Shown here in pieces: positions 622 through 19,414 of a stretch of DNA of 19,414 nucleotides. How positions within the stretch are numbered: position 1 is the stretch's first letter; each line of letters starts with the position of its first letter. The translations under genes were made by a program, and so were the position numbers. Under the pieces are notes generated by a model. That model was not told the DNA's origin, searched no databases, and saw only the letters and a program-made list of their open reading frames with translations. Source of the DNA: Oopsacas minuta (taxonomy: Eukaryota > Animalia > Porifera); assembly GCA_024704765.1 (NCBI GenBank), contig JAKMXF010000116.1:1-19414 (forward strand), written 5' to 3'.

Positions 622-797
622 AATTCATATGTGAACTACTGCTGGTTAGATGCATCAATTTCTATTAGAAAAAATCAAAGTTCATAAAATATGAATTCAT
701 TTTCAGAAACGTCAGTATCTCTTCTTTCGAATGCTTCAAAAATATTTATATTTTACCATGGTAAGTTAGTCAAATTCATGGTTGAAGTACTGCTGGT
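622..797 (+). repeat. Pair of 25-nt imperfect direct repeats, 151 nt apart
   Basis: 622-646 aattcatatgtgaactactgctggt vs 773-797 aattcatggttgaagtactgctggt, 21/25 identical. Confidence 0.55.
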
Positions 798-1795
798 AGA
801 ATATTCAGCTAACTTCACACTCGTCAAAAATACTCCATAAGACAAAAAAACAGAAGTAAAAAGACAAATAATCCGTTTTTATATATATGCGAATTTCGAA
901 TAAACAATTTTTACACTGACTTGACGCCAAAAACCCGATGGAACAAATACTCGGTGTCAAACTAGACTGATTTCAACTATATACCCACTGCTTTCTTCCA
1001 AAGACATTTGTTCGCCCCTATGGACAATGATTTCCAAAAGTGAAGTTACTCCGTAAATGAAGCTCTAGTATTTTTATTTTGAATATAATGAATTTCATTT
1101 GCATGATGCCAATTTTATTGAAATATACAGTAAATTCAGTAAATTCTTGTTACTCATTCTGTTATTTTGTTAGAAACAGGACCTCCTCTCATCGATTATG
1201 TACCAGTACTACTGTAACTCTACTCTAGGTTGGGAGATGCTGGACTCTTGTATAATGATAATTCAAAACTGCTATTTTCATTGCGTAAACAAAACTGATT
1301 TCTAATTCAATTATTTGGTAAGATGATCAGTTTAGAATTTGAGAGATAAATTAATTAGTACATTGATTATGGAACTTAGCAAATATACATTTCAAGGATA
1401 GTTGCAATATTGGGTAGAAATATAATGAAACTACAAATAAGTTGATGTCAGCCCTCTATTTTGACGAGTAACACGTTATTAGATTTTGTCCATTTACAAT
1501 TGAAATTCTTCCTATTACTTTGTGTCAAAGTGGGTGAAGTTTATTGACCAATTATAGATGAATTTATGCTATGTATCTTAGCCTAAGCTAGAAATTATTG
1601 ATTGATTAATGATATTTCGATGATACTGATTGTAAAACTACAAAAATCCAATTATACTTATACGTATAATTACCAGTGATTATTTGTCATTTGAGTATGG
1701 ATAGCAACAGGCAGTATAGTTGTACTTTATCGTCCTCCTGCTGGTCTCAAGGTTTTATACCTAGAACCTGATAGTAATTGTTGCGTATATACTAT

Positions 1796-1822
1796 CAGTG
1801 GTACTCGGATAAGATCTACCTC
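1796..1822 (+). mobile_element. pogo/Tigger-like TIR relic (copy A)
   Basis: CAGTGGTACTCGGATAAGATCTACCTC matches 4711-4737 at 21/27 positions. A CAGT-start is typical of pogo/Tigger-type TIRs. No partner end found. Confidence 0.4.
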
Positions 1823-1847
1823 TTTGGAAAACAAAAATAAATACAAA

Positions 1848-2019
1848 CAATACACCCTCATTAATCCGAACATCACTATTCGAATTGTAAATAATTCCTT
1901 CGGTTAGTGAAATATATCGGAACGATAAAAAGGATCTAGGAGTTTATTTTTGAAGGGTGTACAGACGATGAAAAGGCTGACCTTTAAAGCATTTCCAAAG
2001 GATTAGCTAAGGTGTATTG
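1848..2019. mobile_element. 172-bp MITE, pogo/Tigger (TcMar)-like
   Basis: Left end CAATACACCCTCATTAATC (from 1848); the right end reverse-complements to CAATACACCTTAGCTAATC and is followed by TA (2020-2021). The first ~65 nt align with the start of the 16004-16267 element. Confidence 0.6.
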
Positions 2020-2236
2020 TATTGTCTATGTAGTGTAGGAGTTAGTATCCGATTAGATATTTTATGAAAGTATGCATTTACCAATTACTACTGTAATTAG
2101 ATTAGAATCTCTTAACTTTGCTTGTTTATGGGAGGCCTTAGAGGCTTAGACAATTTTTATGTTGATATGAAGAATTCTAAAACCAAAATTCATTGTCATA
2201 TAGAAACAGTTTTTATATACTCTTATGACAGATAAC

Positions 2237-2320
2237 TTCGATATAACCAGAGTTCGATATAGCAGGTATAATTATACGGTGTGTTTGAGGCATTTCGATA
2301 TACAGTTGTCCCTCGCATAA
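2237..2320. mobile_element. Cluster of pogo/Tigger-like terminal relics
   Basis: Three copies of TTCGATATA (2237, 2253, 2294), followed by TA-CAGTTGTCCCTCGCATAA (2301-2320), which looks like a TIR start. Only a weak candidate partner end near 2518-2536. Confidence 0.35.
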
Positions 2321-2916
2321 ATGTCGTAATATTTCAATCACTGGACAGACCCAAATTTCCCCTGAACTTTAATATATTAGGGCCACTTCATATGTTCAAA
2401 CAGCTATCCTTTCAACTAAATGCAATTTTTTACGGGACCAATTTGGGCTTAAAGTCCTCAAAGACAGGCACCTCAATTTTACAACCTCCCAAATCCGATA
2501 AATGCAACTATCTTCACCATTAGCGAGACTGCTATAGTTGCACAGGTAGTGCCTAAGCTTTATGGATTACTCAAGGAATTTCAAAAACATTCAAATATCC
2601 ATATCTGAGTTACGTATTCTAACAATCTTTACTAAATCTCACATTTTGTTCTATAAAATTTTGATAGTTACAATTAATTACTGTACTAAAATTTGTACCC
2701 TAGGTGTGATAATGCTGACGTAATTCTCCAAATTTCGCCTAAACAAGATGAACGATGGTCGTTTGAACTTATTAGTCCTTATGCGTCCAAATATATTCCT
2801 CATGTCTGAAAAACAAAGAATTTTACTTTTGAGGCCACCTGTTACTGTACTCTGTGGGAGTATATCTACAGTATATTTAACAGGCTATGATTATAATCTG
2901 GGTTTATCCAGATTTG

Positions 2917-2987
2917 TGTGCCTCAAGTAATATTACCAGTGGCATGTGTGTAGCAGTATTGAGGCACAGGAAGCAATTGCCTCCCCT
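2917..2987. mobile_element. Harbinger-like terminal relic with 10-bp inverted repeat
   Basis: CAG|TGGCATGTG at 2937, then GAGGCACAGGAAGCAATTGCCTCCCC. TGTGCCTCAA (2917-2926) and TTGAGGCACA (2959-2968) are a perfect inverted repeat. GCAATTGCCTC recurs at 16322-16332. Confidence 0.35.
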
Positions 2988-3167
2988 CGTATTAGAGCTT
3001 CTCCATATCTTTCTATTACAATCTCCTGACTCCTCTCTTCAGGATCACTATTTACAGCCCAGAGTACTACACTGAATCACATAAATTACCTTGGATGATA
3101 AAATATTGAAGTATCATGCTTTAGATTATAATGGATAATCCATGGATCGTATAGATCTATTGTAGAA

Positions 3168-3215
3168 CAGTGTTTCCAAACTAGTGGTCCTCGGAAGTAT
3201 CTCATTCGGCCACGA
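3168..3215 (+). mobile_element. Solo hAT/Charlie-like terminus
   Basis: CAGTGTTTCCAAACTAGTGGTCC resembles Charlie-type TIRs (CAGTGTTTCCCAAAC). The preceding 8 nt, TTGTAGAA (3160-3167), resemble the NTCTAGAN target consensus. No matching right end seen. Confidence 0.35.
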
Positions 3216-4710
3216 ACTGCCTCTTTTGCATTCATTTATATTTATCATTAGGTTTCTACTTGTTAACCATTAAAACTACTCTGAATTATAATAATCTTAA
3301 CGTCAGGATAGGATGTGGCATATGCAGAGGCATCTGTTCAAATTTGAACCAAATTTTGAAATCTCCAAAGTTGTTGCTTTTGTTTGTTGGGGTTTGGAGG
3401 GATTTTTGGATGTAACATGTTGCATGAAAATCGGAACATGTTATATTTCTTACAACAATTTTTCATGTAGGAATTCGTCCACATTCTCAGGGTTTTACTT
3501 CTAAAATAGTATTCTCTTTTTCATACGCCTGGGCTATACATATTGTATTAGACATGGAATCGAGTGTTTGCACAATTTTTGTACGCTTAGAGATACATAT
3601 GTGCATATTTTCAAGCTGAAATTATACGTACATACTCGGGCAGCATACACCTGGACCCTGGATAATATTACAAACTTTGATCAAACAAAAAGTTGCATTG
3701 TGTATGGTGAGCTTCATTATAGATGTTTATCTACAAATTCTTAAAAAATTGTCTAGAAAAATTTGATATGGTTCCTGAGTTATTGCGTAGAAATCTTGAA
3801 AATGACCATATATGGGCATATTCATGATTGTGACACAGAAGAGACATCATATCAAAGTGTACTTCAAGACAGTAGCGTAGACACGGTAGGGTCTCATAGG
3901 TAACTAGTATTACATATAAGCAATAGAAAATACGAACTCTTGCTCTCGGCCAATATTTATTGGTAGGTACTGCTCACATGACTCGAAAAGTATTGCAGCG
4001 GATGAGATGTTCCGCATAACTCTTCATGATGTTGATTTATGAATTTCCTAAAGAATGATAGAATAATGCAGAAATACTGAAAATGTTGAAATCTCGATTA
4101 TGATCCGTCCCCCAAAGAAACATTAATTGTATTGCTACTTGTATTATGCAAAAAGTACTTCTTTCGATTTCCCCCAAGAAATATATTTTTGGAAATCTCC
4201 TCATTGGGCTAACTGCAGAATTATAAATGTTTCACGCCGTATTTACGTGTATACTATTTTTTCAAAGCTGATAGACGTTTAGGGTGTCCAGGACATGTAA
4301 AGAATTTGTGAAATTATTGTCTATTTGCATGGCTTATCCAAATTTTACAAATAAGATATCTTTGTGACGCTGGAGCCATATCTTGGATAATTATCTAATA
4401 TAACTATTGGATATATATCTCAGGTAATCGAATCTAAGCAACTCAGTTATTTAGAAAATTTCATCGTTAGGCCATGTAAACTAAATTACTTCTCATTCGG
4501 AATTTCCACAGAAAATTGGATGGCGGACGGTATTTGACATTTATTTTGTGTTGGCTAATTATTATGTAAAGATTTTGACCATTCGAGTATTCCATTACAT
4601 TCTCTCTGGCATTAAAATATTGACTATTTCAACTATACAAGTATTGCACAATATGTGATCAAAGAATTATCCTGAATTCATACTGTTAAAACGCGATTTA
4701 TCTGTCTATA

Positions 4711-4737
4711 CAATAGAACTCGGATAAGACGTACTTC
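4711..4737 (+). mobile_element. pogo/Tigger-like TIR relic (copy B)
   Basis: TA|CAATAGAACTCGGATAAGACGTACTTC; 21/27 identical to 1796-1822. Confidence 0.4.
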
Positions 4738-4946
4738 AGTTAATACGTACTAATTTTGTAGATATGATCTTTCTCAGAATAGTCCAAATTTGCCTGCTAT
4801 TTATATTATTTTAATGTGTAATTAGATTCTTCTGATTGAATCTGTCTATAAGACATTGAATATTATTTTGCAAAATTTAATATTTTGCTGATGCACAATT
4901 TAACAATATGCAATGTATAAGCAAGCTATAGCTATTACATGTTACC

Positions 4947-5279
4947 CTAAGCATCATAGTAAGCTTCATTCTCTTCATAGAGATCCAAAAGAGCTAAAAA
5001 TTCTAAATCAATGATTTGTCCTCTCAGAAATTCTACTTCTTGAAGAAGAGCTTCATATTCTAGTAGCAGAGAATCTCTCAGTACCTCGAGACGTTTTTCT
5101 TTTGATTTCTTCTTTTGCCTTTGATCTTTATTGTATTTACACATTTTAATAAGTCGTCGAGATTGTTTTACATTCCTTGCCTCATCTGTTGTTAATCTTT
5201 TATCCTTTATCAAGCGATTTAGCTCTTTGATGCCCATGGTAGCTATGTTATTATTATTATTTGAAGCTATCATTACCAT
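4947..5279 (-). CDS. Small Maf-like bZIP protein (110 aa) with divergent basic region
   Basis: IATMGIKELNRL..LTTDEARNVKQSRRLIKMCKYNKDQRQKK aligns in register with the Maf extended homology and basic region (LVSMSVRELN...KQRRRTLKNRGYAASCRIKR). Leucines at 64, 71, 78, 85 and 92 form five heptads. Single ORF with an acidic tail. Confidence 0.85.
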   Translation of the reverse strand: MVMIASNNNNNIATMGIKELNRLIKDKRLTTDEARNVKQSRRLIKMCKYNKDQRQKKKSKEKRLEVLRDSLLLEYEALLQEVEFLRGQIIDLEFLALLDLYEENEAYYDA

Positions 5280-5306
5280 AATTCGAGGTAAACATAAAAT
5301 TCAGCT

Positions 5307-5315
5307 CTATATATA
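5307..5315 (-). promoter_or_regulatory. Possible TATA box for the Maf-like gene
   Basis: TATATATAG on the minus strand, 27 nt upstream of the first ATG. Short motif in AT-rich DNA, so weak. Confidence 0.2.
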
Positions 5316-6553
5316 CCGTATAACGTGGTGTCTTGGGTTCTTACATTAAATACTCTATATGAATCAATTAGTGTGAGGTTTCTAAACATGACTACTCTAA
5401 TAGCTGGAGATTTATATTATACACCTTATTAGTGCCAGGATTTATTCATCAGACATCAAAATAAGATTATTTCATTTATAGACTGAAGAGTATTGACCAT
5501 TTGACAAACTAAAATGAATACTTTATACAGAGTTAATTCATAATTACTGGCATTAGTGACATCGTTCTCAGCTTTTACCAGAGCATAATAATTAGTATAA
5601 TATGTGTCAGACAAGTAATAACGTTGGGAGAAAATAGTGAAGTATGTACCACACATAATGGTTATATAGAACGCAATTCCCCTGGTACTAAGTTAATTAT
5701 CTATCAATCTGTAATACATATTATAATTTCCATTATTCCATTTTCATTAGCACTACTCCATCATTATGTTTGAAACAGATGAACTTATTTGTTTTCTTCT
5801 CAATGTCTTAATGGAATACCACACAAGAACAACGTTTCAATGAATTTATTACCCATTGACTAAGCTAATTGATTTTGCTAATGATTTGTATTGTGTGGAC
5901 TAGTGAGTTAAGAATTATTCTAAATTTAAAATTATATTTACACTTAGCTATACAATTAGAGACGTTGAGCTTGAGATATGCATGTAAGCTACAATGATTG
6001 CTTCTGGCCAATGTCTGTAATTATCTCAATTTCAGAAGGAAAAGTGATCACCATTATTCTAGAGAAAGAAATTTGTTGGTTCTTGTAAATAAATCTTCGC
6101 CCACATCGCCGAGCGACAAATACACAGCCATTTGATAATGAACAAATGGACATAGTTGATCATAGGTTTGAAAGATGATAGAAGTACAATTAAAATTATG
6201 ACCCATTGCAATTCAATTGGTGGAATTGTTGACCGAACTCTAACAAGGCTTATCTTGGCATTTTTACTGTACCAACTATAGTATAGTATAGTGGCGCAGT
6301 TCTAAATGGGTGACTTTCTTAGTCGGTAGGTAGGATGTTTATATGTGTTCGCTCTCCTGTTCACACCTTTGGAGATTAAGACTCGAAATTTCTAATGTGT
6401 ACTCATAGTAACATCTAGTTATGCACCTGACACTTGAAATTATTTGATGTGTATATTTTCACACCTTTTAGGTGATTAATCATATTTCCATACATTTCTA
6501 TATAAAATTCAAAAGAATGCTAGAGATTAGGTTTCAACATGTTATCATGGGCT

Positions 6554-6709
6554 CAACAGACATATAGAGGTAATCAAGTACGCCGAATCCGATTTTCGCA
6601 TTTTCAAGTATGTTCTTCTTATGAATATAAAGTAAACAAATAATTGAAATATCATACACGTAGATAATTGCTCGCAACAGACATCTGAGGTACCAAATTA
6701 AGCTGAATC
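6554..6709 (+). repeat. Two diverged direct repeats about 120 nt apart, probably DNA-transposon subterminal motifs
   Basis: 6554-6589 caacagacatatagaggtaatcaagtacgccgaatc vs 6675-6709 caacagacatctgaggtaccaaattaagctgaatc. An inverted copy of 6567-6592 lies at 9163-9188 (22/26 identical). Confidence 0.5.
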
Positions 6710-8970
6710 TGGTGGATTTGAGATTAATTAAACAATAGTTAAGTATATGTATTTAAAACTCTACAATTTTTTTGGCCAATTTCTGAGATAGTAAATATAA
6801 ATTGACAGTCTCAGAAATGCTTTTTGACTTTCCTGTACTTCTTATCTATGGTTCAGGCCTGACCACTTTCCAATTTTGCTGCCTCCGGACCTGTAAAGAC
6901 TTATCGATACTTAACGGTTTATATTTGCAAACTATTCCCTAATCAAAATCTCATCAAAAATAGTTTTCTTAGCAAATCTGTCAGTAAATGATCCAATTTT
7001 GAGAATTGAGATTCTGTAACGAGTCAATTTATATAATAGGATCTAAGGCTGTTTCCGTACAAATATCAAAAATTATAATGTTCGCACTTTCCAGAGTTAT
7101 AGTAGTTACTAGTAAGGACACGGACTACTAGAATACACAGATGTGACAAAGTCAACCACAGAGAGGAATGCATAGACTGAACATTGATTTACCACAACTA
7201 CAGTCTTACTTGGATTTTTTTATTGAAATATCCCGCTGAGGGACAGTAGTACGTATATCTAATGACAGAAACTTTATCTCTTTCCTCCTTCATCTAGTTC
7301 ATAGTACAATATTTTGATTACCTACCATAAACCATGCATATTGTAATCTATATCATTTCCTATACATTATTAATATTCAATAAGGAATCAGCAGCCCTAC
7401 TATTGATTGACTTGCTAGTAGTCTCACCAGGTTGAGTCTTCACAGTTAGCTCTATTCATTAGTAGATTGCCATTTATGGAAACATAGACTGGCTGCAATT
7501 GATTCCCAGAATTCAAGCTCAACCGAGGAGGATTAACATATTACTATAGTAACATGACCTCACTGTTCCATCTTGACCCTCATTGTGTTCAGTTAATGTT
7601 TTCATTACATATATAAACTGTAGTGTATGCTTTCTCTTAAGATTTCTAAATTAATTGGTTTTATTTCTGTGTTCAATATACATACAAGTAAGTATTCTAA
7701 TTATATAATTCTTGTTTCCTTCAATTACTAGCACATCACTAGTTCACTTACCTGTTACTTCTGACAGGAGGCACCTGTATAACAACCACTTTATTAGTTA
7801 TCTTATACATTCCAGATTCTAGGCCTTGAGCATGATTCAACAACTTGAGCACATTTATTGCATTTAACTCTACTATTGTTCTAAAATTCTGATTTTCTAT
7901 AAAAGTGTGTAGTTATTTCTAGATGAGGTGCTTTCTAAAAAAATGACGTCGCCCAAAAAACAACCGCAAAGCGCCTTTGTGCAGGTTCCACACGCATTAG
8001 TGCAAAGTTTTAGAAAACAAACTCAAATCTGAGGTAGTCATCATACTGAATTGTTGGTTCTATATTAAATAAATTAATCTGTTATTTTTCATTTATCCAA
8101 ATATACTTTAATTATGACGTCATTATCTTTCCATTCAAAAAGTTTGATGAAGCTATTGACTTCTAGTTTGTTACTATTATACTAGACAAATATTGAATAG
8201 ATTAATAGTTTTATTGTGTTTTATTGAAAAAAGTAAGGTTAATTCTGAGATCCTGTCTGACCTTTCAGCAGCCATTTCATTGCCTTACATATTAAGTTGA
8301 TTACATTCTAGTTTCCACCAATTGGTGGTATTAAGGTATTCAAGTCAATTATCCGTTAGAATCATCATTTTATCACTACTAATTTACCACATTTTCTTTA
8401 TTACGAGCGTTTGGCTCGTCGCATTGTGCCTTGAGGTATCCATTATTCTCCAAATTGACGGCCCCTTTGAGTAGTATAATATATATATTTAGAACAATGT
8501 AATTCACAATTATACAATTATTTATTTATATTCATTATTATATTAGCTCTCAATAATTTGGGTTTCTAATTCCCTTTTAGCAGTACGGTGATTAATTTCA
8601 TTTTTTCCATATGACAGAATCAGTCCTACAATCTAATTATGTATAATTTCATTTATAAGTCCATTGCCTGCAATATACAATTCTGCATAATTCAGAATTA
8701 TCAATTAATGTAAATTACCGTGATTTAACAAAGGTCACAGACATACAGACAATCAATAAACGATATTTGACATTACAGATTATTACAATTATCTAAGATA
8801 TTAAATATTTCTACAAAATTTCATTCCATATTGCTGCCTCATAGTGAAATTTATTAGAATTAGCATGTACGTATTATTTAATTAGAGTTTAATGTTTAAA
8901 AATGAAGGAATCTACGCTTGTTAGTGATACATGAATAAGCCCTACACTCAACTTCGAGACATTCTAATTC

Positions 8971-9045
8971 CGAGCGCGCTTCGCTTGCTCGCGCTACAAG
9001 GTTGTGAACACTTTGTGTCCACACTCGGGCCTACTGCCCTCGAGT
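8971..9045. repeat. Two GC-rich hairpins in AT-rich DNA, probable non-autonomous transposon remnant
   Basis: 8971-8991 cgagcgcgcttcgcttgctcg (CGAGC/GCTCG outer stem, GCG-ctt-CGC inner stem). 9023-9045 actcgggc-ctact-gccctcgagt (8-bp stem with a 2-nt bulge). Confidence 0.55.
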
Positions 9046-9162
9046 AGATAAACTCATAATCTTAACCGTAGCAAACATGACCCTGCCATAATTTTTAAAT
9101 CTCCTTACTTATGTCCCCAAAAGTGAACAAATATTTAGGGAATGTTGTTAACAACACTATAT

Positions 9163-9188
9163 TCGGACTCAGCATACTCGATTACCTC
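9163..9188 (-). repeat. Inverted copy of the 6567-6592 motif
   Basis: tcggactcagcatactcgattacctc vs the reverse complement of 6567-6592, tcggattcggcgtacttgattacctc; 4 transitions. Short enough that chance is not fully excluded. Confidence 0.45.
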
Positions 9189-11100
9189 AGTATAACCATT
9201 GATATGTTTCCACCACAATTTTGATTTACCATATATTCATAAAAACAACAATAAATTTACATATGATAAACTTGCAAAGGCGAAATTCGTATTCAGCGTA
9301 CGTAGTTCAAATAATGCACTAATTACAAATGCTGATGCTTTATCTGCCCTCTACAAGCATTCTTAGGGGTGTATAGCAATGGAATGTTCTCTTCCTTGAC
9401 CTAATTGATTAATGAAATTAGTTTTTGAAAGATATTCTAGATCCAGTCTTCACATATTGTGGTTTCTACATTCTAATAAGTAACTAACTAAATCTATATT
9501 ACTAGTGTACATAAGAGATATTCCAGCAACCTATTTAGTGACGTGAATTATGAAGTTGCTGGGGATTTGTATGCAGCAACCTAGGTAACTGGTTAGAAAC
9601 CTACTAAATTATTGAATATGAGTAATACTATTTCTTGGGTTTTTATGAATACTGGTGGCTTAGTTACGAACATTGCCAAAGATGGAACCGATAGAGATTT
9701 TCTTGGCCTAACCCAACCGGTCAATCCCCCCCAGCTAACAATATATACAAGTATAATGGGAAAATAATATTTCATGAAAGTATGGATTAAATATTATAGG
9801 TATAAACCATATTGAATGGAATCTTGACCGGTACCCCACCCGGCCGGTTCCATCTCTGGTCTTGAGTCATTTTAACGACACAACTAGTAAAAAATTCATG
9901 TAGGAAACTCTTATAAATTCATTAGGGTTCAAAAATATCTAGAATTATAGTAACACAATTTGAAAGGTAACTCATTCTTTGGTTACACAAAATCAGCCAG
10001 TCAAACTAGACCGGCCGGTCATGCAGAACCGGTTTCATCTCTGAACGTTGCACTCAAGACATATCGATATGTTCCCCGTAGCCCTATGATATTACGAATA
10101 CTATGTGACTATTACAAATGATCTATTATTGCTCGTCCCTGAGTTTACACATTAATTTATATATATATATCATTAATGTAGGTTGATAACCTTGTATCTC
10201 TTAGGTAAACATTCAAACTCTAATCTATCTGTTCTCGTTTATAACCAGATAGTGAATCATAAACGTTTGCAATACATTTATGCATGTCTTGCTCAGTAAT
10301 ACAATTTTTCCTATAAAAGAATTCTATTCCCTAATAAGGAATAAACTGACTAAATTCATACAGCATTGTAGATCATTAGCTATTGTTGAATTTGTCTAGC
10401 AGTGCATATGCATTCTGGTTTCTAGTTCAAATTCTCGTAATCTAGTACATTTCAAACCATAATTTCCTATCTGTAACTGATAATCGGCCGAGTGATACCC
10501 AGTAAATCTCTCCAAATAGTCATCTGATGTAAACCAAAGCCATCTTACATCAGGTTGTTAAATAAGGCAGCAGTTGCGTTGGTTATTCAGAAGCCCTTTT
10601 ATGTTTTATCACATATTCTACACTACAGGCAACCAGATAACTTCGTTCCTAGTTTTCTATGTGCATATATATGCCTTGCATTTAGATGGAAGCAAGTTTA
10701 ATTTTTGCTTCTTTCAATTTATCACATATATAGACACACATATAGTGTATAAATAAATCTGAACCTACTACCTCAGCTGCCGCATAACACATGTTCAATT
10801 CAAAACTGCAAAGTTGTATGACATCTTTTTGTTCAGGGAACTTTTGTGAAATTCGCACAACGCCTCAGTCCTTTGTTCTAACTAATGCCTATAGTGACAG
10901 ACTTGTACACACGACCTGTAGCATATAGATCACCTTACAGGTATATAAATGCCCTTATCAGTGTTTCTTACATTGCTCTGGTTATTACGCGATTGTTGTT
11001 TATAAGATTTTACAATTATTTGTCTCAACAATATTCTGATTTACGGAATTTTATTCAAAATATATATTAGTTGATTTGGCTAATAGATTAAATTGTGAAT

Positions 11101-11133
11101 TATTCTCTCTAGCTACTACTTCTCATGGTTTGA
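11101..11133 (+). promoter_or_regulatory. Likely 5'UTR splice acceptor plus a 2-codon uORF before the RhoGEF start
   Basis: Pyrimidine tract tattctctctAG ends at 11112. ATG GTT TGA at 11125-11133 is in frame with, and 3 nt before, the main ATG at 11137. Confidence 0.4.
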
Positions 11134-11136
11134 AAC

Positions 11137-14100
11137 ATGCAAGCTCTGCATAGACCAAATCTTACAGATATTGATTTGTCGTCTCACGCCGGATTCGGAG
11201 ACTCGATGAGCCTCCCTACTACACCGGATCGGACGAGATCAAAACCATTTCTAAAACCAAAACCTAAAAACATACCAACCTCAGTTCTCAGAGGTACTAT
11301 AACTAACTCTATAACAGATTCTCGTATTGAGTCAGCTCGTGCTGTATCCATGCTACCTACCGTTCCTCTCTCAACCGACTCAGCTTCATCACAGCTCTCA
11401 GAAGACAGTACCTACAATCCGTCAGAGACACAAATGGACAGTCCCAATCGTGTTTCTCAGTACCCCGCTTTCAGGTCTCGTCCCCTTGTTGCTCATAGAT
11501 CATTTGATATGATCGGGGGTGCAAGAGACAGCTCCTCGTCCTCTACCCAGCTAAGTGAAGCGGAGCCTCCAGATGTCCTAACCCGGTCTATATCTAACCA
11601 GGAGACCGTTCCTACTGACGTCATACCGTCACCTAAACCACGCCCCTCTGCTAATTCCCCCTCTCCCCTCCTCTTGATGGACAGACGCTCTCGTGTTCAG
11701 GATCTAGTCTCTAAGTTCGATGCTATCTCTCTCAATACGTCACGGGCTGGAGTACCAGTCATCCCAGGTAAGGGATCTCCTCGGAGATGTGTCAGCGCTA
11801 TGACCCATCGAGAGGATCATCCTGTCCAGCCCTCCCCTCCCCCTCAGAACAAGAATGTTCGCCCTCCTAAAGCTAAAGACGAGGAAATTAAAATCAAACG
11901 AAATAAATTCTTTAATCGTAAATTCTCACCAAAAACCAAGATAGACACGCGAGAAGACAGTCCCTCCCTGAACCGTAGAACTAGTATCCTAGACTCTCCT
12001 ATAGTAGAAAGGTCTGAGAGTCTTTACGAGAGTAAAAGTCTAGACAGAGCAAGTATGAAGAAATCTAGAGATAAGAAGAGGAAGGAAAGTTTCCTCAACT
12101 TTATCACCGGAAGTCCGAAGAATTCTACCAGTGATTTGACTGAGCCCGCTCCTACCTCTCCTCCATCCGGAGAGATTCTAAACGGAGAAACAAACACACC
12201 AGAAGCTAAGAAGAAAACAAAGAAAGTTAAAGGCAAGAATATAATGAAGAATATGCTACGTACACATAAAAATACAGCTAAACAGAATAGTAATGAGGAT
12301 CTGAGCAAGGAGCAGAACAAACACAAGAAGAAGCGGAAACAGGTTGAGATAGTACCAAATAATTCAGCTGACTTTGAGAATACAGTAGAGATACAAATCG
12401 TTAAACAGGACACAAGTAAGAGTTCTAAATCGGAAACGAAGAATGATAAAAAATCTAGAAAGAGCTCAGTAGATAAATCACAATCTTTCCAGCCGATTTG
12501 TTCAGAATCATTCTACACAGATCTGGACGATATAGAAGCTAATCGCAGATCCTGGATAGATCCCTATGATTCCCCTCTCTCCCAAAAACGACCCGGCTCT
12601 AAGCGTGACTCCGCTTACGACAGCGAACAGTCCCGAGGAGACAGTGCCATCCAGGAGCCCCACCGCCTCACATTCAAACCCTCCCTAGCCGATGAAATTC
12701 TAGAACAGGTGGGTATACACAGAGACTCCTTAGTTGTAGTTAATGACATGTACGAGAGCATATCTCTGAGTGACAGACCTACTCCCATAAGTCTAACCGA
12801 TGAGGATCAGAATTCATTCAACTCTGATGATGACTCACACAAGACTCCAGTGGAATTTGACTATACCAATGATCCTCTCATAAACGCCCCTGCTGCTCCA
12901 TTAGCCCCCCTCCTTACATCAGATGACATGTATGATGATATTATAGTACGGGAGATACCTTGTGATAGTAAGTTTAGTGAGACAGAGGCCTGTGTATCAG
13001 TAGAGCCCTGTAGCAACACGCTTACACCTGTCACGCCTCTCAACGGCTCGGTCAGTCCCTCTCTTATTTATGAGAACTTCAATGACTCAGTAGAAGAAGG
13101 TATACCTTCCCGCAGTTACTCGGATTCAGCTGCTAACAGCAGTTTCCTCTACGACCTGCCATATGAGCCCTCTGACAAGAGACACACCCTCACTAGTCAG
13201 CCCCGTCCCTCCCTCTTCAAGATATCTCCCCTAGAAACCTCTCTGGAGCTAGATCTGTATGAATCTGTAGAGGTGTCACGCGATATGATACCCCGATCAA
13301 ATAACGCAAAACCGATGCTATCTGCTCCATCTAGTGTATCTCACAAGTGTGACGTAACCATTGATAAGGAGCACCCACAGACCTCTAGTAACCCACCAAA
13401 ACGACCCTCTACCATATTCACTACAGACACAACCTCGTTATACAGATCTACTGGTATAGCCTCTGTAGAAGCACTGATACTCGAAGCTAGCATTGCTTGT
13501 AAGAAGAAGTCATTTGGTGAGAATACCACTCCTGCCGTGTCTAATAAGGAGGTAGCACCTAGAATTGAAAATGTTCCTAGTCAGGAAAAGCCAATCCCAG
13601 AGGCTGAACCCACCCCACGTGCTTCTGAAGGGGACAGTTTCTCTGACAGCTCTGACAATGAGATGGAATCCATCACAGATTGGTCCCTTAGAGACCGCTC
13701 CTCCTGCTCTTCTCCTGTCTCTATAGAAGAAATAATATCATCTGTCAGAGTGATATACAGCTACAGTGCTCAGTTCCCTGACGATATCTCCCTGAAGGAA
13801 GGGGACATTATCAACGTGCTAGATACCACTGATCCTATGTGGTGGATAGGCAGACATAGCATTACTCTACGTAGAGGATATTTCCCATCCTCCTATGTAG
13901 AGCCCTATACACAGGAGTTATTGGATGTTTCTTTCGATGAGGACACGATCTATTTAGACATCTGTCCTGAGGAAACCATCTCTCCTCAGAGTAACAAATC
14001 TCACCTCAAGAGACGGAGTGCAATTAAACGCTCTAAATCTAACGTATCTGACTCCAGCAGCAAGCCTGCAGTTTCTAAGCTTTCTCAGGATGAGATGCGG

Positions 14101-15297
14101 TATAGAGTTATAGAAGAACTGGTCAGTACTGAACGTAACTTCCTAAAATCTCTGAAGATAGTAATCAAATGCCGGGATGAGTGTGTTAAGAGAGTAGGAA
14201 CACTCCGGCCTGATTCTCTCTTCACTACAATAGAGATACAGCAGGTATTCAACAATATTGAAGAATTGTATCATTTCGAAGAGATATTCTTAAGAGAACT
14301 TAATGAGTGTGTTAAAGAATATAAATACGAGTCTTCAATGGTTGGGAATCTGTTCGTTAGGCACGAGCAGGGATTTAAAGACGTATATATTCCATACTGT
14401 AACAACCAGACTGTGTCCAGCTGTAGGCTGAGTATGTTAATGGAGGACACTCGTCATCTCCAGTTCTTCAGGAGCTTCACAGTACTAACCACTGAGGATA
14501 AGTTGCCCATTGAAGCGTACCTGCTTAAACCTGTCCAGAAGATTTGTAAGTACCATTTACAGCTGAAGGAACTACTGAAGAGTACCTCGCCCTCTCACCC
14601 TGATCATCCACATGTGGAGCAAGCATTAGAGGTTATGAAGGGAGTTACTGCTAATATTAACGAGAAGAAGCGTCGTATTGACAATCTGCCCACTATCCTA
14701 AGCCTCCAGCACTCTATAGACAACTGGATTGGCCCTGACATACTCGACAATTCCACTACATTACTGCAGTCTGGTAAACTGTATAAGATATCTAAAGGAC
14801 ATTCTCAAGAGAGGAAATTCTATCTATTCGATAATCTCTTGCTCTATTGCAAGGAGGATGCTCTACGTACTCTTAAAATGAAAGGTAGAATTACATTGAA
14901 TGAAGAGAATATTGTTAAAGACTTGGATGATGATCAATTACATCACAACGGTATCCCGCTAAAGAATGCATGGAAAATTATTAACCGTGTTAAAGACAAG
15001 GAATATATTATCTACACCAAGGATGCTAGAACCAAACGGGACTGGTTGGATGGATTCAAACGTGAGAGAGAAATGGTTGGGAAAGACAAGCTTGATAACT
15101 TTAAGATAGCACCACGTGATTTAGAAGATGCTTTGTTTGTAATAGATTGCAACAAAAAGAGGAAGAAGAAGGGTAATACAGCTCGTACGAAAAGTATCGG
15201 TTTCGAATTTATCCAAAAATCACGCTCTTTAGGCAAAGAGAAGAGTAAACCGGAAATACTTAGTTCTGCTGACGTTGTTCATTCAATGGCTACTTGA
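11137..15297 (+). CDS. Dbl-family RhoGEF, SH3-DH-PH, ARHGEF4/ARHGEF9/SPATA13 (Asef/collybistin)-like
   Basis: Uninterrupted 1386-codon ORF, visibly more GC-rich than its flanks. It has a canonical SH3 (YSY...WWIG...GYFPSSYV), DH (EELVSTER...LLKPVQKICKYHLQLKELLK...NINE) and PH (FYLFDNLLLYCK...KRDWLDGF), with about 870 aa of Ser/Pro/Lys-rich N-terminus. The in-frame stop at 11131 fixes the start. Confidence 0.96.
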   Translation: MQALHRPNLTDIDLSSHAGFGDSMSLPTTPDRTRSKPFLKPKPKNIPTSVLRGTITNSITDSRIESARAVSMLPTVPLSTDSASSQLSEDSTYNPSETQMDSPNRVSQYPAFRSRPLVAHRSFDMIGGARDSSSSSTQLSEAEPPDVLTRSISNQETVPTDVIPSPKPRPSANSPSPLLLMDRRSRVQDLVSKFDAISLNTSRAGVPVIPGKGSPRRCVSAMTHREDHPVQPSPPPQNKNVRPPKAKDEEIKIKRNKFFNRKFSPKTKIDTREDSPSLNRRTSILDSPIVERSESLYESKSLDRASMKKSRDKKRKESFLNFITGSPKNSTSDLTEPAPTSPPSGEILNGETNTPEAKKKTKKVKGKNIMKNMLRTHKNTAKQNSNEDLSKEQNKHKKKRKQVEIVPNNSADFENTVEIQIVKQDTSKSSKSETKNDKKSRKSSVDKSQSFQPICSESFYTDLDDIEANRRSWIDPYDSPLSQKRPGSKRDSAYDSEQSRGDSAIQEPHRLTFKPSLADEILEQVGIHRDSLVVVNDMYESISLSDRPTPISLTDEDQNSFNSDDDSHKTPVEFDYTNDPLINAPAAPLAPLLTSDDMYDDIIVREIPCDSKFSETEACVSVEPCSNTLTPVTPLNGSVSPSLIYENFNDSVEEGIPSRSYSDSAANSSFLYDLPYEPSDKRHTLTSQPRPSLFKISPLETSLELDLYESVEVSRDMIPRSNNAKPMLSAPSSVSHKCDVTIDKEHPQTSSNPPKRPSTIFTTDTTSLYRSTGIASVEALILEASIACKKKSFGENTTPAVSNKEVAPRIENVPSQEKPIPEAEPTPRASEGDSFSDSSDNEMESITDWSLRDRSSCSSPVSIEEIISSVRVIYSYSAQFPDDISLKEGDIINVLDTTDPMWWIGRHSITLRRGYFPSSYVEPYTQELLDVSFDEDTIYLDICPEETISPQSNKSHLKRRSAIKRSKSNVSDSSSKPAVSKLSQDEMRYRVIEELVSTERNFLKSLKIVIKCRDECVKRVGTLRPDSLFTTIEIQQVFNNIEELYHFEEIFLRELNECVKEYKYESSMVGNLFVRHEQGFKDVYIPYCNNQTVSSCRLSMLMEDTRHLQFFRSFTVLTTEDKLPIEAYLLKPVQKICKYHLQLKELLKSTSPSHPDHPHVEQALEVMKGVTANINEKKRRIDNLPTILSLQHSIDNWIGPDILDNSTTLLQSGKLYKISKGHSQERKFYLFDNLLLYCKEDALRTLKMKGRITLNEENIVKDLDDDQLHHNGIPLKNAWKIINRVKDKEYIIYTKDARTKRDWLDGFKREREMVGKDKLDNFKIAPRDLEDALFVIDCNKKRKKKGNTARTKSIGFEFIQKSRSLGKEKSKPEILSSADVVHSMAT
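13744..13905 (+). other. SH3 domain of the RhoGEF
   Basis: VRVIYSYSAQFPDDISLKEGDIINVLDTTDPMWWIGRHSITLRRGYFPSSYVEP. Confidence 0.92.
14089..14667 (+). other. DH (RhoGEF catalytic) domain
   Basis: Conserved CR1 (EELVSTERNF) and CR3 (LLKPVQKICKYHLQLKELLK) and C-terminal NINE. Boundaries approximate. Confidence 0.93.
14761..15063 (+). other. PH domain
   Basis: LLQSGKLYKISKGHSQERKFYLFDNLLLYCK ... NAWKIIN ... KRDWLDGFKR. Boundaries approximate. Confidence 0.9.
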
Positions 15298-15573
15298 ATA
15301 ATTCACGGACCAATGATAGAGATGTATATTTTATACTTTATTTTAGTTAAATGACTGATTGTTGTACAAATTGTATTCATTGATTGAACTAATTAATTAT
15401 TGTCAACTGGGTGAACAGATATTTCTTGCAATTTCTTTATCACTGTTGAATATGCTATGATTAATATTCATGATATAATTTCAAAATACTCACATTTTTA
15501 AGGGTCGAATATACATAATTGTTGTTATCTCAGTGTTAACGAGCTTTGGGGTCGTAATTTATTGATATTTATT

Positions 15574-15612
15574 CAGGGAAGTCGCCATGGGGGAATTGGG
15601 GGAAATGCCCCC
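15574..15612 (+). mobile_element. Harbinger-like left-end relic
   Basis: CAG|GGAAGTCGCCATGGGGGAATTGGGGGAAATGCCCCC: G-rich terminal style like the adjacent element, with no partner end. Confidence 0.35.
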
Positions 15613-15639
15613 TTTCATAAACTCAAGCTTCATGTCCTG

Positions 15640-15762
15640 TAGCGGATCCAGGGGGATATAACCCTCCCCATCAGGATAATCCTACACGTGAATGTTTGAA
15701 ATTGAACCATTATATGTTGAGTTGCACTGAAATATTCACCAAATTCCCCCCTGGATACGCCA
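15640..15762. mobile_element. 123-bp PIF/Harbinger-like MITE
   Basis: 16-bp TIRs, TAGCGGATCCAGGGGG (15640-15655) and CCCCCTGGATACGCCA (15747-15762), with 2 mismatches. CTG flanks both sides (15637-15639 and 15763-15765), matching the 3-bp CWG target duplication known for animal Harbingers. Confidence 0.75.
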
Positions 15763-15929
15763 CTGAATATGATATACATTACTTTTGTGCCCTGTAAATT
15801 TTTTATTTTTGATTTCTAGTTTCACGGAGATTATCGATGATAGATTTCAGTTTGAATTAGAATTATATTTCTTAGTACAAGCAGGTAACGTATTTTCTTT
15901 CTTTGATTTCTATTTTACAGATTACGTAT

Positions 15930-15942
15930 CAGGGGTGTAGCC
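15930..15942 (+). mobile_element. Short Harbinger-like end relic
   Basis: CAGGGGTGTAGCC; short and solo. Confidence 0.25.
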
Positions 15943-16003
15943 GTGTAGGAGTAGGTGTTAATGTTATCTAAAATTCTTGGGAGCATTCATATAGTACGTA
16001 TTA

Positions 16004-16267
16004 CAGTACACCCTCACTAATCCGGACAGCACAGTTCTAATTGCAAAATAATCCGTTCGGATTAGCGAAATGAATATTGTAGGATCTAGCAGCCCATCTT
16101 TTCCAAAAGTAATACAATTGATGAAAGTATTGCCAACACATGTAATATAGTATTAGATATTTATCTGCAATAAAATTGGATATATATTTGTCATTTTATA
16201 AATTTTAGACAATTTTCCATAGATTGTATAAGCCTTAGGCAATGTTCTGATTAGCGAAGGTCTACTG
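16004..16267. mobile_element. 264-bp pogo/Tigger (TcMar)-like MITE
   Basis: TA|CAGTACACCCTCACTAATC ... GATTAGCGAAGGTCTACTG|TA: 19-bp TIRs with 3 mismatches, TA on both flanks, and an internal subterminal CGGATTAGCGAA (16058-16069). Related to 1848-2019. Confidence 0.72.
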
Positions 16268-16618
16268 TATTAGCATAACGAGGTATTATTTGTGTTCTTT
16301 TAATGACGAAACAAGAGCTTTGCAATTGCCTCTGCATGCTTCCCTTATGAACCAAGCCAGTACAACACTATAATATCATTCGCGAAGATTTGTATTAATT
16401 TTCGTTCCCTTAATATGAAGTCTTTTGAATATACTAGTAATAATTTTGGTCCCACTGGGTTTCACAATAAACGACCCTAACTATAATCCATTTTAGCTAA
16501 TTAAGTTAGCTTTATCCTAGAAACCTAGACTTATGTATACGATTCTCCTTGCTCAAGGGGTAGTAAAATAATTTTTGCAGATTTCTATTTCGCGATTCTA
16601 CAGTAGAACTGGTTATAA

Positions 16619-17932
16619 ATGCAGGTAGAAAGGAACTTGGTGTTATTCAGGGGTGTGGACAGTGTTAAGAGTTCCCTAACAGATCTAATATTCGGACAAG
16701 ATAACGTAAGAATATCTCCTCATGGCAGAGAAGTGAGAGCATCAAGTTCATGTTTGAGAATATTTGAAACCAATTCAGATGATAGAGAGTTATGTTTACA
16801 TATTTTGAGATCACAAACATTAGAGACCTGTTTTGTTGTTGTTATTGACATAACTAAAAGTACTGAGTTTGTTAACAAATTAGAAAGTTTGAAACATTTG
16901 TCTGATCACCTAGCTGACTGGTCATATTCCCTATTTGGCAATTGTTTGATTACCTTTACTCACACCAATGAGCTAGCAGCTGGAGTTGATAAACAACAGC
17001 TGGTGGATAGAGAATTTGGAGAGATCTTATCTCTAGTGAATAGGAGGTATATGTTCGTAAATTCTACTATTGTGACACAGGAGAATAGAGATAGAGTGTT
17101 AGATGAATTGTTACATCTTTCTAAACCTATTTTGACAATTCTCTGTTATGGAAACAATGAGTTTACAAGTGGGGAACTACAATTCAATTTAACTGAAGAA
17201 AAGACTCGAAATATTCCTTATCGTATTTCCATTCATCACGCTCCAGATCTCGATCTCTCTAATGCATTCACACAACCTGTCTACACACCAGAACTTGCCC
17301 GATTAATTAGACAACCAGACCGGATCAGAATAGGAGTATCAGTATTCTTAATCCTGATTAGCTTGGATAGTATTTTCAGTCAATCAATGTTTGATCTAAT
17401 TACAGATATACCAAATCTACATGGGTTAAGAAATGAATGTAGTGAGTATTTTTGGAGCAAAGCTGTAATAGCATTTGATACGAATGGACATCCTAACCCT
17501 GAGGAGATGATAAGACTCTCTATTAATGGTAATGATGGAATTAAGAATATGGTTAATAAAGTAGGAGGAAAGTATGTTTATCTTTCTCAAGTCAGGCTAG
17601 ATGCTTTAATGAATGATTTATTGGTTCAAAGTCAAAAAGTAGGACTGATTAATCAGAATAATGAATTCATTGGTGGAGGAGATGTTAATGGAAGAGCTCT
17701 ACGAGTTAAGAAATCATTCCTGCCAACAATGTGGAATGCTTCTTCACTAGAGTTATATGTTTTTTTTCTCTCTAAAGTATTGTGCTTTTACCGGGTATAT
17801 GTATTTCCAATATCTTGGAGATCAATAATATCGAGATTTTTGAAAATTTTCAAAAACAAAAAGCTACCTTCCCTTTTCCGTCTACTCATTCAATTCTTTA
17901 AATTTCACATTTCCAACCATGTTCAGTGTTAA
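16619..17932 (+). CDS. Tandem AIG1/GIMAP-like double-domain protein 1, probable pseudo-GTPase; C-terminus uncertain
   Basis: RNLVLFRGVDSVKSSLTDLIFG resembles the AIG1 LVLVGKTGSGKSATGNTILG. Also LITFTHTNEL (G4 region), LVNRRYMFVN, and a second repeat with GVSVFLILISL..FS, FWSKAVIAF and MVNKVGGKYVYL. In-frame TAA immediately precedes the ATG. Clearly paralogous to 18578-19414. The last ~60 codons may read into intron/repeat DNA. Confidence 0.78.
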   Translation: MQVERNLVLFRGVDSVKSSLTDLIFGQDNVRISPHGREVRASSSCLRIFETNSDDRELCLHILRSQTLETCFVVVIDITKSTEFVNKLESLKHLSDHLADWSYSLFGNCLITFTHTNELAAGVDKQQLVDREFGEILSLVNRRYMFVNSTIVTQENRDRVLDELLHLSKPILTILCYGNNEFTSGELQFNLTEEKTRNIPYRISIHHAPDLDLSNAFTQPVYTPELARLIRQPDRIRIGVSVFLILISLDSIFSQSMFDLITDIPNLHGLRNECSEYFWSKAVIAFDTNGHPNPEEMIRLSINGNDGIKNMVNKVGGKYVYLSQVRLDALMNDLLVQSQKVGLINQNNEFIGGGDVNGRALRVKKSFLPTMWNASSLELYVFFLSKVLCFYRVYVFPISWRSIISRFLKIFKNKKLPSLFRLLIQFFKFHISNHVQC

Positions 17933-18028
17933 TCTCTATTTCGGATCCTCTTACGTTTTTTAATATATTTGTTACTATTCTTGATTGTGTTTAGAATATT
18001 CAATTATGAACCTGGCCTGGTTAATATA

Positions 18029-18057
18029 CAGCAGAACCTCGAGCCCTCGATTATCCG
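18029..18057 (+). mobile_element. Internally deleted pogo/Tigger-like left end
   Basis: TA|CAGCAGAACCTCGA followed by CCTCGATTATCCG. Confidence 0.4.
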
Positions 18058-18410
18058 TGTGAAAAGAAATATTCCAATTATTATTTTTGTGATTGACAGG
18101 AATGTAAATCTGCTTGTCAACTTCTAATTAAACGATATCATAATGTTAGACCAATATTCAGTTCGATATTGTTAATACTTTAATTTGGAATTCTTTTTAT
18201 TGATTACAGCAACACGTATCGTAATATGATAGACCTATGGCAATCTGTTAATTCATTAATTAACACCAAATTGGTAACATGATTTAGAATTTTTGACAAA
18301 GAACAGAAGTTCATAACATTATTGTTCAGATATGTAGATTGTGAATTTGAACTAGACATACTTTCAATCATAATGTTTTATTGTATTGACATCAAGACAG
18401 CCCCATTACA

Positions 18411-18576
18411 GTAAGTATAATTTGCATGGAAATTTAGACATTGGCTGAATTGATGGGAAACTCAGAAACAAGTTTGCCAAAGCAGGAAACAAAGCCAACA
18501 CCTCCATTACCCGTACAAACCCCGCCACGTAAGGTTACACTAATTCCTTCGAAAGAAATTTTGATCGCACTTTCAG
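18411..18576 (+). other. Candidate 166-nt GT-AG intron upstream of GIMAP-like gene 2
   Basis: Donor ACA|GTAAGT at 18411 and acceptor TTTCAG| at 18576. Splicing joins ATG 18373 (MFYCIDIKTAPL, phase 2) in frame to MNNIK. Confidence 0.4.
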
Positions 18577-18581
18577 CATGA
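18453..18581 (+). CDS. 42-aa ORF MGNSETS...PTPPLPVQTPPRK..., overlapping the next start (ATGA)
   Basis: MGNSETSLPKQETKPTPPLPVQTPPRKVTLIPSKEILIALSA*. It fits MGxxxS/T and is Pro-rich. The stop TGA (18579-18581) overlaps ATG 18578. Confidence 0.3.
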   Translation: MGNSETSLPKQETKPTPPLPVQTPPRKVTLIPSKEILIALSA

Positions 18582-19414
18582 ATAACATCAAATTTGTATT
18601 GGTTGGAAGTCACAATTGTGGCATGAACTCTTCTTTACGAATGATGTTAGAACAGACTGGTATCAGTTCTATTAATGTGGAATGTTTGAAGGGTGAATTA
18701 TTGGATGCTAAAACTAAGTTTATAAAGCTACTACAAGACAAATCATACCACACAGTGTTCCTTATAGTAATTCCAATAACATTGAGAGTGCTACCAGTGC
18801 AATGGTTAGTTTGGCTGAAGACTGAATGCAACAATTTGACTCTTTCATCTGTTAACCTTTTCAGGAATGCAATCATCATATTCACTCATGCTGACAAGGT
18901 TAGCCCAACTCTTGATATTGACTTATTGAGACAACATGTGAAAGAGATGTGTATGATTGAAGAGTGGGATTATCTGCTTAGCTGTGTTTATGGCCGTTTT
19001 GTCTGTGTAAACTCAATCTTACAAGAATTAGAATACAGACGTAAAATTGTGAATGAAATTATTCAAATTTCCAAACCATCTTACTCAATCTTGATCCATG
19101 GGAACAATCATGCAAATTCTTCAATATTATTCACAAAATTACAATTATCCGAATGGAATAATGTGATTGAATTGGAAGATATACGAATGAAGTTCTATTT
19201 CTATCCAGATCTTGATCTATTCCAGGGATTACAACAACATGATTGTGGAGATATTATCAGGAATTTGATTGGTAACCCTGTGTACCATGGTCAGGGCATC
19301 ACTCTCATTTTACTCTTAATCAGTCAGGAAGAGATATTCTCCAGAGACATGAAAGAGATGATAACTGATCTTCCACACAACGAACATTATCGGATGGACC
19401 ATAAAACTGATAAG
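18578..19414 (+). CDS. Tandem AIG1/GIMAP-like double-domain protein 2 (3' partial), probable pseudo-GTPase
   Basis: I translated it by hand: 279 codons, no stop before the window end. MNNIKFVLVGSHNCGMNSSL...LFRNAIIIFTHADKV...VYGRFVCVNS...ISKPSYSILIHGNN...YPDLDLF...GITLILLLISQEEIFSRDMKEMITDLP. It shares LFxN, FTH, VNS, SKP, GNN, PDLDL, LIS, IFS and ITDxP with ORF 16619-17932. Confidence 0.82.
   Translation, partial: MNNIKFVLVGSHNCGMNSSLRMMLEQTGISSINVECLKGELLDAKTKFIKLLQDKSYHTVFLIVIPITLRVLPVQWLVWLKTECNNLTLSSVNLFRNAIIIFTHADKVSPTLDIDLLRQHVKEMCMIEEWDYLLSCVYGRFVCVNSILQELEYRRKIVNEIIQISKPSYSILIHGNNHANSSILFTKLQLSEWNNVIELEDIRMKFYFYPDLDLFQGLQQHDCGDIIRNLIGNPVYHGQGITLILLLISQEEIFSRDMKEMITDLPHNEHYRMDHKTDK

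Follow-up and report, generated by a model that had tools for sequence, protein, structure and literature searches.

In the glass sponge Oopsacas minuta, two genes in head-to-tail order, ORF1 and ORF2 (ORF, open reading frame), occupy the 3′ end of contig JAKMXF010000116.1 (C116); they encode paralogous, GIMAP-like proteins with two domains each. The window analyzed here is this entire contig (19.4 kb; positions 1 to 19,414 of the forward strand). Members of the family were assigned to three types by motif tables and a maximum-likelihood tree: ORF1 is an A type, ORF2 is a B type, and the C types retain canonical GTP-binding motifs in their first domain. The canonical set of G1 (GxxxxGK[ST]), G3 (DxxG), and G4 motifs is found in none of the four domains of ORF1 and ORF2, and all four appear to be nucleotide-dead, the loss of binding being read from the motifs. 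The interpretation that we favor, with a probability of roughly 0.7, is that ORF1 and ORF2 form a dead tandem-GIMAP paralogue pair whose products would no longer be switches and would act as membrane-bound, non-catalytic partners of active C types. The features of the locus are as follows.

16619..17932, + strand: ORF1, A-type tandem GIMAP-like pseudo-GTPase (by motif), 437 amino acids (aa), single exon, complete.
16619..17125, + strand: ORF1 domain 1 (aa 1–169), predicted G-domain fold with degenerate motifs, from a low-confidence AlphaFold2 (AF2) model.
16649..16672, + strand: ORF1 degenerate P-loop RGVDSVKS (aa 11–18); the family consensus is GxVDSGKS.
17126..17692, + strand: ORF1 domain 2 (aa 170–358), predicted GIMAP fold that lacks a P-loop (CYGNNEFTSGE); the conserved EFIGG comes next.
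17693..17929, + strand: ORF1 C-terminal tail, predicted to be helical, amphipathic and moderately hydrophobic; confidence below 50 in the model.
17933..18577, no strand: intergenic spacer between ORF1 and ORF2, 89–91% identical to the matching spacer of contig C183 (paralogous or allelic).
18578..19414, + strand: ORF2, B-type tandem GIMAP-like pseudo-GTPase (by motif), the first 279 of 449 aa lying within the window.
18578..19075, + strand: ORF2 domain 1 (aa 1–166), predicted GIMAP fold.
18605..18628, + strand: ORF2 dead P-loop GSHNCGMN (aa 10–17), with Walker Lys replaced by Met and Ser/Thr by Asn.
19076..19414, + strand: N-terminal two thirds of ORF2 domain 2 (HGNNHANSS, PDLDL, ITDLP), cut by the contig end.

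The two proteins share one architecture, as a preliminary description of this DNA had recognized. They align by BLASTP with 31% identity over 225 aa (E 3e-26), collinearly through both domains, and every motif lies where it had been placed: SKP at 17120 in ORF1 and 19070 in ORF2, GNN at 17150 and 19100, PDLDL at 17243 and 19205, and ITDxP at 17399 and 19361. The same description had correctly noted that the second gene was missed by the ORF track; it is unlisted because the listing excludes ORFs that run off the contig end, and the ORF2 frame stays open from 18533 up to the final base of the window. The first ATG in this frame, at 18578, encodes the Met with which homologues also begin. Positions 19316–19414 of the window are identical to bases 1–99 of contig C45 (54 kb) at 99 of 99 positions, compared with only 95 of 99 for the paralogous contig C183, indicating that ORF2 continues on C45 and that the two contigs abut inside it. 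Read on into C45, ORF2 encodes 449 aa. This corrects both assembly and annotation, since public annotation lists the single gene as separate partial proteins of 258 and 177 aa. The joined ORF2 was used for the tail and sequence analyses, and its structure was predicted from the window part only. It had been suggested that the array as a whole may continue past the window; only ORF2 itself was seen to do so. At this base composition, the chance of an open frame is P ~3e-14 for 437 codons and P ~7e-10 for 294 codons, so neither frame is accidental. The nearest named relatives of ORF1 are the O. minuta hypothetical proteins LOD99_9493 (64% identity) and LOD99_11184 (43%).

The motif losses differ between the two proteins. 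Domain 1 of ORF1 has both Walker-A glycines replaced (Gly to Arg and Gly to Val), FETN for DxxG at G3, and FTHTN for FTHxD at G4, i.e., Asp to Asn. Domain 1 of ORF2 has CLKG at G3, with the Asp lost, in addition to its changed P-loop. Domain 2 of both proteins contains GNN and no GK[ST], which is likewise absent from domain 2 of every family member of all three types. The genes had been introduced as AIG1/GIMAP-like; judged by these motifs, the products are pseudo-GTPases and not GTPases. Beyond domain 2, a conserved (R)EFIGG motif is present in A and B types; this linker leads into a predicted long helix and then the C-terminal tail. The tail of the joined ORF2 (aa 377–427) is a strongly hydrophobic stretch of about 50 residues with a Kyte-Doolittle maximum of 2.9, and its central PVTLP also occurs in B types of other assemblies. 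This tail is read as a putative hairpin-type membrane anchor.

Predicted structures place the pair near the GIMAPs. The AF2 model of ORF1 has a mean predicted local distance difference test (pLDDT) score of 66, and domain 2 is its better part (~70–92 over the core, aa 241–330, with much of approximately aa 240–320 at ~87–92). The seven best structure matches of this domain in a VIA comparison are all to GIMAP2, GIMAP1, GIMAP7, or GIMAP5, with Z values of 13.5–15.3 and 165–174 aa aligned. The model of the window part of ORF2 has a pLDDT of 79 and a predicted template modeling score (pTM) of 0.78. In an exhaustive VIA search of 48,161 PDB representatives, its domain 1 matched GIMAP7 best (Z 14.5; root-mean-square deviation (rmsd) 2.6 over 151 aa), followed by GIMAP4 (Z 11.6), with the rest at 10.5 or below. 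On these models, ORF1 domain 2 and ORF2 domain 1 both have a GIMAP-type G-domain fold. Structure searches had been named beforehand as a check; they did not point to a non-TRAFAC fold, and for these two domains GIMAPs ranked first.

Most sequence comparisons point in the same direction. The conserved box of GIMAPs, between G3 and G4, gives a mixed picture: a hydrophobic strand and a short motif align with GIMAP7 LVLQLGRYTEEE (FVVVIDITKSTEF in ORF1 and FLIVIPITLRVLP in ORF2), but the residues differ. Conservation extends to the FTHxD(E)L motif and the AIG1-typical hydrophobic strand. A profile of A types and ORF2 matches Pfam-positive C-type paralogues of the same genome with E values of 1e-46 to 1e-60 (profile positions ~65–366), and these paralogues score 44–64 bits against Pfam AIG1 (PF04548), for which the cutoff is 27 bits. 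A fusion of two B-type units on contig C166, ~80% identical to ORF2, scores 37 bits against the same model. Weak Pfam AIG1 matches were obtained for 7 of 15 family members (best E 2.7e-5), in the domain equivalent to ORF1 domain 1. With a joint profile of A, B, and C types, GIMAP7 was the best match among PDB sequences (E 7e-5), across the whole of domain 1, and 30 of 30 ESM-Atlas neighbors are AIG1 proteins, the structural neighbors being GIMAP8-like. Common descent with bona fide AIG1-domain proteins is clear from these comparisons, despite the lack of a direct Pfam match. The AIG1/GIMAP kinship first proposed thus stands by fold and by descent from Pfam-positive paralogues, and not by a Pfam assignment of either window protein. 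A sub-threshold Pfam match of ORF2 to Mab-21_C was taken as noise.

A profile built from ORF1 and its database relatives gave at least 22 matches in the O. minuta genome. The matches are clustered on contigs C119, C362, C116, C23, C166, C133, C44, and C183, with single matches on C10, C45, and C188. The C types have canonical G1 (GKxxxGKS/T) and G3 (DxPG) motifs in domain 1, often begin with MG, and are the outgroup to A and B types together. The A types, which form the ORF1 clade (support 100/99), have GxVDSGKS at G1 in most members, and FE[T/P/L/A/I] replaces DxxG at G3. The B types, which form the ORF2 clade (support 100/100), have G-x4-G-[M/I/V]-[N/A/V] at G1 and therefore neither a Walker lysine nor the Mg-binding Ser/Thr. 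This dead P-loop is present in every B-type sequence examined, from O. minuta and from two other assemblies (50% identity), in which the B types are full-length, retain strongly conserved domain-2 motifs, and keep the hydrophobic tail. The A and B clades each hold sequences from other assemblies, which indicates that the A/B split is old. As far as the sequences go, the AIG1/GIMAP branch with A and B types is so far known only from O. minuta and close relatives. Short ENA contigs bearing A types were considered as expression evidence and discarded, as they are metagenome scaffolds and not transcripts.

Selection has acted on both frames. In a neutral simulation of ORF1 over half the synonymous divergence (dS) to its nearest paralogue, ~15.6 stop codons were expected, and none of 2000 replicates stayed open. 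The ratio of nonsynonymous to synonymous divergence (dN/dS) of ORF1 is 0.61 against the A-type gene of C362 (bootstrap 95% interval 0.46–0.80) and 0.44 against that of C119 (0.32–0.58), and the ratio of ORF2 against the B-type gene of C23 is 0.26 (0.19–0.34). Both frames are kept by real but weak purifying selection, as in birth-and-death families. An old duplication under purifying selection had been proposed: the age is supported by the span of the A and B clades over several assemblies, and the frames are indeed maintained, but purifying selection acts only weakly, and dN/dS among recent copies does not fall significantly below 1. The dN/dS check that had been suggested gives 0.26–0.61 in the deeper comparisons and up to 1.27 among recent copies.

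Several results weigh against the interpretation of ORF1 and ORF2 as dead, membrane-bound GIMAP partners. Regarding the architecture, sequence likeness between domain 1 and domain 2 is not significant by hhalign (E 0.24), though in register, so the two-domain assignment rests on structure. The tail of ORF1 contains no 19-aa window above a Kyte-Doolittle value of 1.6 and is not clearly a membrane anchor. Adjacency of an A type followed by a B type was rejected as a universal rule, since in one other assembly a B type is flanked by C types. Regarding family membership, neither ORF1 nor ORF2 matched Pfam AIG1 at E values up to 1. A phmmer search of PDB sequences with ORF1 returned nothing; the profile of A types and ORF2 found no GIMAP there, only a marginal match to Ypt51 (E 0.05), and a B-only profile found no GIMAP and nothing meaningful. 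Domain 1 of ORF1 (pLDDT ~47–66) best matched the G domains of FeoB, Nog1, and EngB (VIA, Z 12–12.8), a generic TRAFAC result and not a GIMAP one. With whole chains, the top Foldseek matches were the double GTPases EngA/Der/YphC, with both domains aligned, and Toc33 reached a Z of 9.9 with ORF2.

These results would suit proteins that are not AIG1/GIMAP derivatives but another TRAFAC double GTPase, EngA/Der-like or Toc/septin-like, with a resemblance to GIMAPs. Such an origin is hardly credible. The EngA superpositions are poor (template modeling score 0.22–0.26, rmsd 17–18 Å), which indicates that the match reflects two G domains in one chain. EngA/Der have two tandem TRAFAC G domains in common with the window proteins, but they act in bacterial or organellar ribosome assembly and possess a KH domain as well as two active P-loops, whereas the window proteins have no KH domain, their C-terminus being helical and hydrophobic. 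At the domain level, moreover, GIMAPs come first by a clear margin; the profiles tie the family to Pfam-positive AIG1 paralogues in the same clusters; the AIG1-typical motif and strand are conserved; and all Atlas neighbors are AIG1 proteins.

The P-loops themselves retain some features of active ones. ORF1 keeps Lys17-Ser18, ORF2 keeps the G-x4-G spacing and a G4 of the FTHxD form (FTHAD), and a normal strand-loop-helix is predicted for the P-loop region. Nucleotide binding persists in IRGM-type GTPases in which Met replaces the Walker Lys. One might accordingly regard ORF1 and ORF2 as working nucleotide binders with non-canonical P-loops, i.e., GTPase or ATPase switches like the IRGM GMS proteins. 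We consider this very unlikely: in ORF2 the Lys, the Mg-binding Ser/Thr, and the Asp of G3 are all missing; in ORF1 both Walker glycines, the DxxG motif, and the Asp of G4 are gone; and nothing resembling a P-loop is seen in domain 2 of any family member.

The remaining opposing results concern maintenance. Against the recent copies on C183 and C166, the dN/dS of ORF2 is 0.56–0.93, with intervals that reach or exceed 1, and the ratio between the A-type genes of C362 and C23 is 1.27. Sister copies on C362, C119, C44, and C188 carry stop codons. Because recent-copy ratios lie at 0.56–1.27 and neighboring copies carry stops, part of the family is decaying. In the ORF1 subclade, P-loop decay looks stepwise from the sequences: GKS on C119, GKQ on C362 and C23, and RGVDSVKS together with the Asp to Asn change at G4 in ORF1 itself, whose terminal subclade is on a long branch of the tree. 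Furthermore, ~8% of neutral simulations of ORF2 stay open at 0.05 substitutions per site. ORF1 and ORF2 might therefore be young, decaying relics of a birth-and-death family, with frames still open and no function of their own. This is improbable, given that no neutral replicate of ORF1 remained open at a dS of ~0.5 and that the deeper dN/dS comparisons are significantly below 1. In addition, the dead P-loop of B types is common to full-length, 50%-identical proteins of other assemblies with conserved domain-2 motifs and tail, and sequences of several assemblies are found in the A clade and in the B clade alike.

For the dead tandem-GIMAP pair that we favor, the following course is proposed. 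An ancestral protein would have carried an active G domain together with its dead copy, and A and B types would then have lost the switch altogether. They may now constitute a constitutive membrane-bound scaffold, cap, or regulator of active C types, which are encoded in the same kind of clusters; contact with C types would be made through the G-domain interface by which GIMAPs form homo- and heterodimers. A role of the A and B types as membrane-anchored, non-catalytic partners is probable, and a putative role in immunity is plausible from the behavior of the family.

Among the closest counterparts of this arrangement are the C types themselves. Those on C119, C133, and C166, for example, have the same two-domain plan with a dead second domain, are single-exon genes, and lie in the same kind of clusters, but they differ in the canonical GKxxxGKS/T and DxPG of their domain 1, which are no longer present in ORF1 and ORF2. 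The vertebrate GIMAPs (GIMAP1, GIMAP2, GIMAP5, and the heterodimer-forming GIMAP7) share the G-domain fold with a helical extension (Z 13.5–15.3 for ORF1 domain 2 and 14.5 for ORF2 domain 1), a G4-type motif of the form FT(H/R)xD(E)L, and, in the conserved-box region, the hydrophobic strand, and they are likewise encoded by clustered, tandemly duplicated, fast-evolving genes. Like the anchored GIMAP1, GIMAP2, and GIMAP5, ORF2 has a C-terminal hydrophobic predicted anchor; the tail of ORF1 is weak in this respect. GIMAP2 has two hydrophobic segments. The window proteins differ from the vertebrate GIMAPs in having two domains per chain and no canonical G1 or G3, with an identity of only 10–19%.

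The three domains of vertebrate GIMAP8 are described as potential GTP-binding domains (PMC4201521). The tandem AIG1-type G domains in one polypeptide are shared with ORF1 and ORF2, and GIMAP8-like proteins are their nearest structural neighbors in the ESM-Atlas; the difference lies in three domains versus two dead domains and a hydrophobic tail. GIMAP8 is not known to have a membrane anchor.

Among IRG immunity GTPases, the IRGM-type GMS regulators are a membrane-bound subfamily in which Walker Lys is replaced by Met (G-x4-G-M) and which regulates canonical GKS paralogues. On this model, the B types without the lysine and the A types without DxxG might be dedicated trans-acting regulators of active GIMAP-like paralogues, as donors of a basic finger or as membrane caps or guards. 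We hold this version to be unlikely. The likeness is one of analogy: only the Lys to Met change is common to B types, which also lose the Ser/Thr, and the GTPase family is different. No IRG chain is among the best structural matches listed for the window proteins. A Lys within D(I/V)(T/N)K is invariant among A types, and its column aligns with Arg103 of GIMAP7, the catalytic finger; in ORF1 this Lys is Lys80 (16856–16858, DITK). A basic residue is absent from this column in C types, and Leu, Arg, or Trp occupies it in B types. As a single-column observation, the invariant Lys of A types is a lead that would fit the idea of a trans-acting partner.

The order of an A type followed by a B type recurs at three other sites of the genome, on C183, C23, and C362. 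Bases 1–7680 of C183 are 89–93% identical at the nucleotide level to window positions 17599–19414, covering the 3′ end of the A type, the spacer, and the B-type gene. The C183 copy is interrupted by an insertion of ~5.8 kb that holds a 323-aa ORF with a weak match to a hAT dimerization domain (E 0.01). C183 and C116 end at the same homologous base, and C183 is either a recent segmental duplicate or a diverged haplotig. For the pair on C23, nucleotide identity to the window is 79% in the A gene but 69% in the B gene; the corresponding values for C362 are 78% and 67%, and the B copy there is broken. In these two duplicated pairs, the A genes are closer to those of the window (78–79%, dS ~0.5) than the B genes (67–69%, dS ~1.2). 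This gap is unexpected if the pairs were copied as units, and gene conversion among A genes or faster change of B genes is possible.

In the other assemblies, A and B types are found among same-strand, Pfam-positive AIG1 genes. A COX5A gene is 86% identical between one of these assemblies and O. minuta (C133:169300–169806) and adjoins an AIG1 cluster in both, lying ~7 kb from the C133 cluster in O. minuta; these two facts suggest that the other assembly is a related sponge with a syntenic cluster. The position of the COX5A-linked cluster is conserved and its content differs, with a B type in the other assembly and only C types seen on C133. The B-B fusion on C166 (325–2631) is a 769-aa open frame in which two B-type units are joined in frame, giving four dead G-like domains. 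The fusion lacks a hydrophobic tail, its protein is 80–84% identical to ORF2, and a canonical C-type AIG1 gene lies just upstream.

According to a 2022 survey, no GIMAPs were detected in sponges (PMC8857920). A brief remark on single-exon AIG1-domain clusters in glass sponges, with mention of an O. minuta gene on scaffold 133, appears in the genome paper of Aphrocallistes vastus, which describes no dead subfamilies (PMC10282587). AIG1, GIMAP, and GTPases go unmentioned in the O. minuta genome paper (PMC10280926), and among the papers searched none joins O. minuta with GIMAP. Since glass-sponge AIG1 clusters are on record (PMC10282587) and multi-G-domain GIMAPs such as GIMAP8 are known, the phrase "undescribed lineage-specific system" in the preliminary description goes too far. 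What appears to be new, from the sequences, is a set of tandem-domain, tail-bearing GIMAP-like proteins that are fully nucleotide-dead by motif; for the B type at least, conservation extends to two other assemblies, apparently of related sponges.

The at least 22 genome matches constitute a diversified GIMAP-like family in a glass sponge, consistent with the remark in the Aphrocallistes paper. Selection, although weak, has kept subfamilies in which every G domain is dead by motif, one of them dead in every sampled assembly. Pseudo-GTPases are known as a class, and the retention of dead subfamilies is in line with an increasingly common view of such proteins as regulators. With its single-exon genes in a 61-Mb genome, the family also offers a simple system for asking what the GIMAP scaffold does without its switch. 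If the regulator reading were true, a system of active GTPases and dead regulators would have evolved independently in one of the earliest-branching animal lineages, where GIMAPs have long been said to be absent.

The rest of the window is AT-rich, with very few long ORFs, and has a eukaryotic look. Directly upstream of the pair, at 11137–15297 on the + strand, a single ORF of 1386 aa encodes SH3, RhoGEF (E 5e-40), and PH domains; this gene is the exception in base composition, with a GC content of 0.42–0.47 compared with 0.30–0.35 in the rest of the contig. A 110-aa ORF at 4947–5279 on the − strand matches Pfam bZIP_Maf (E 1.7e-9, 38.5 bits).

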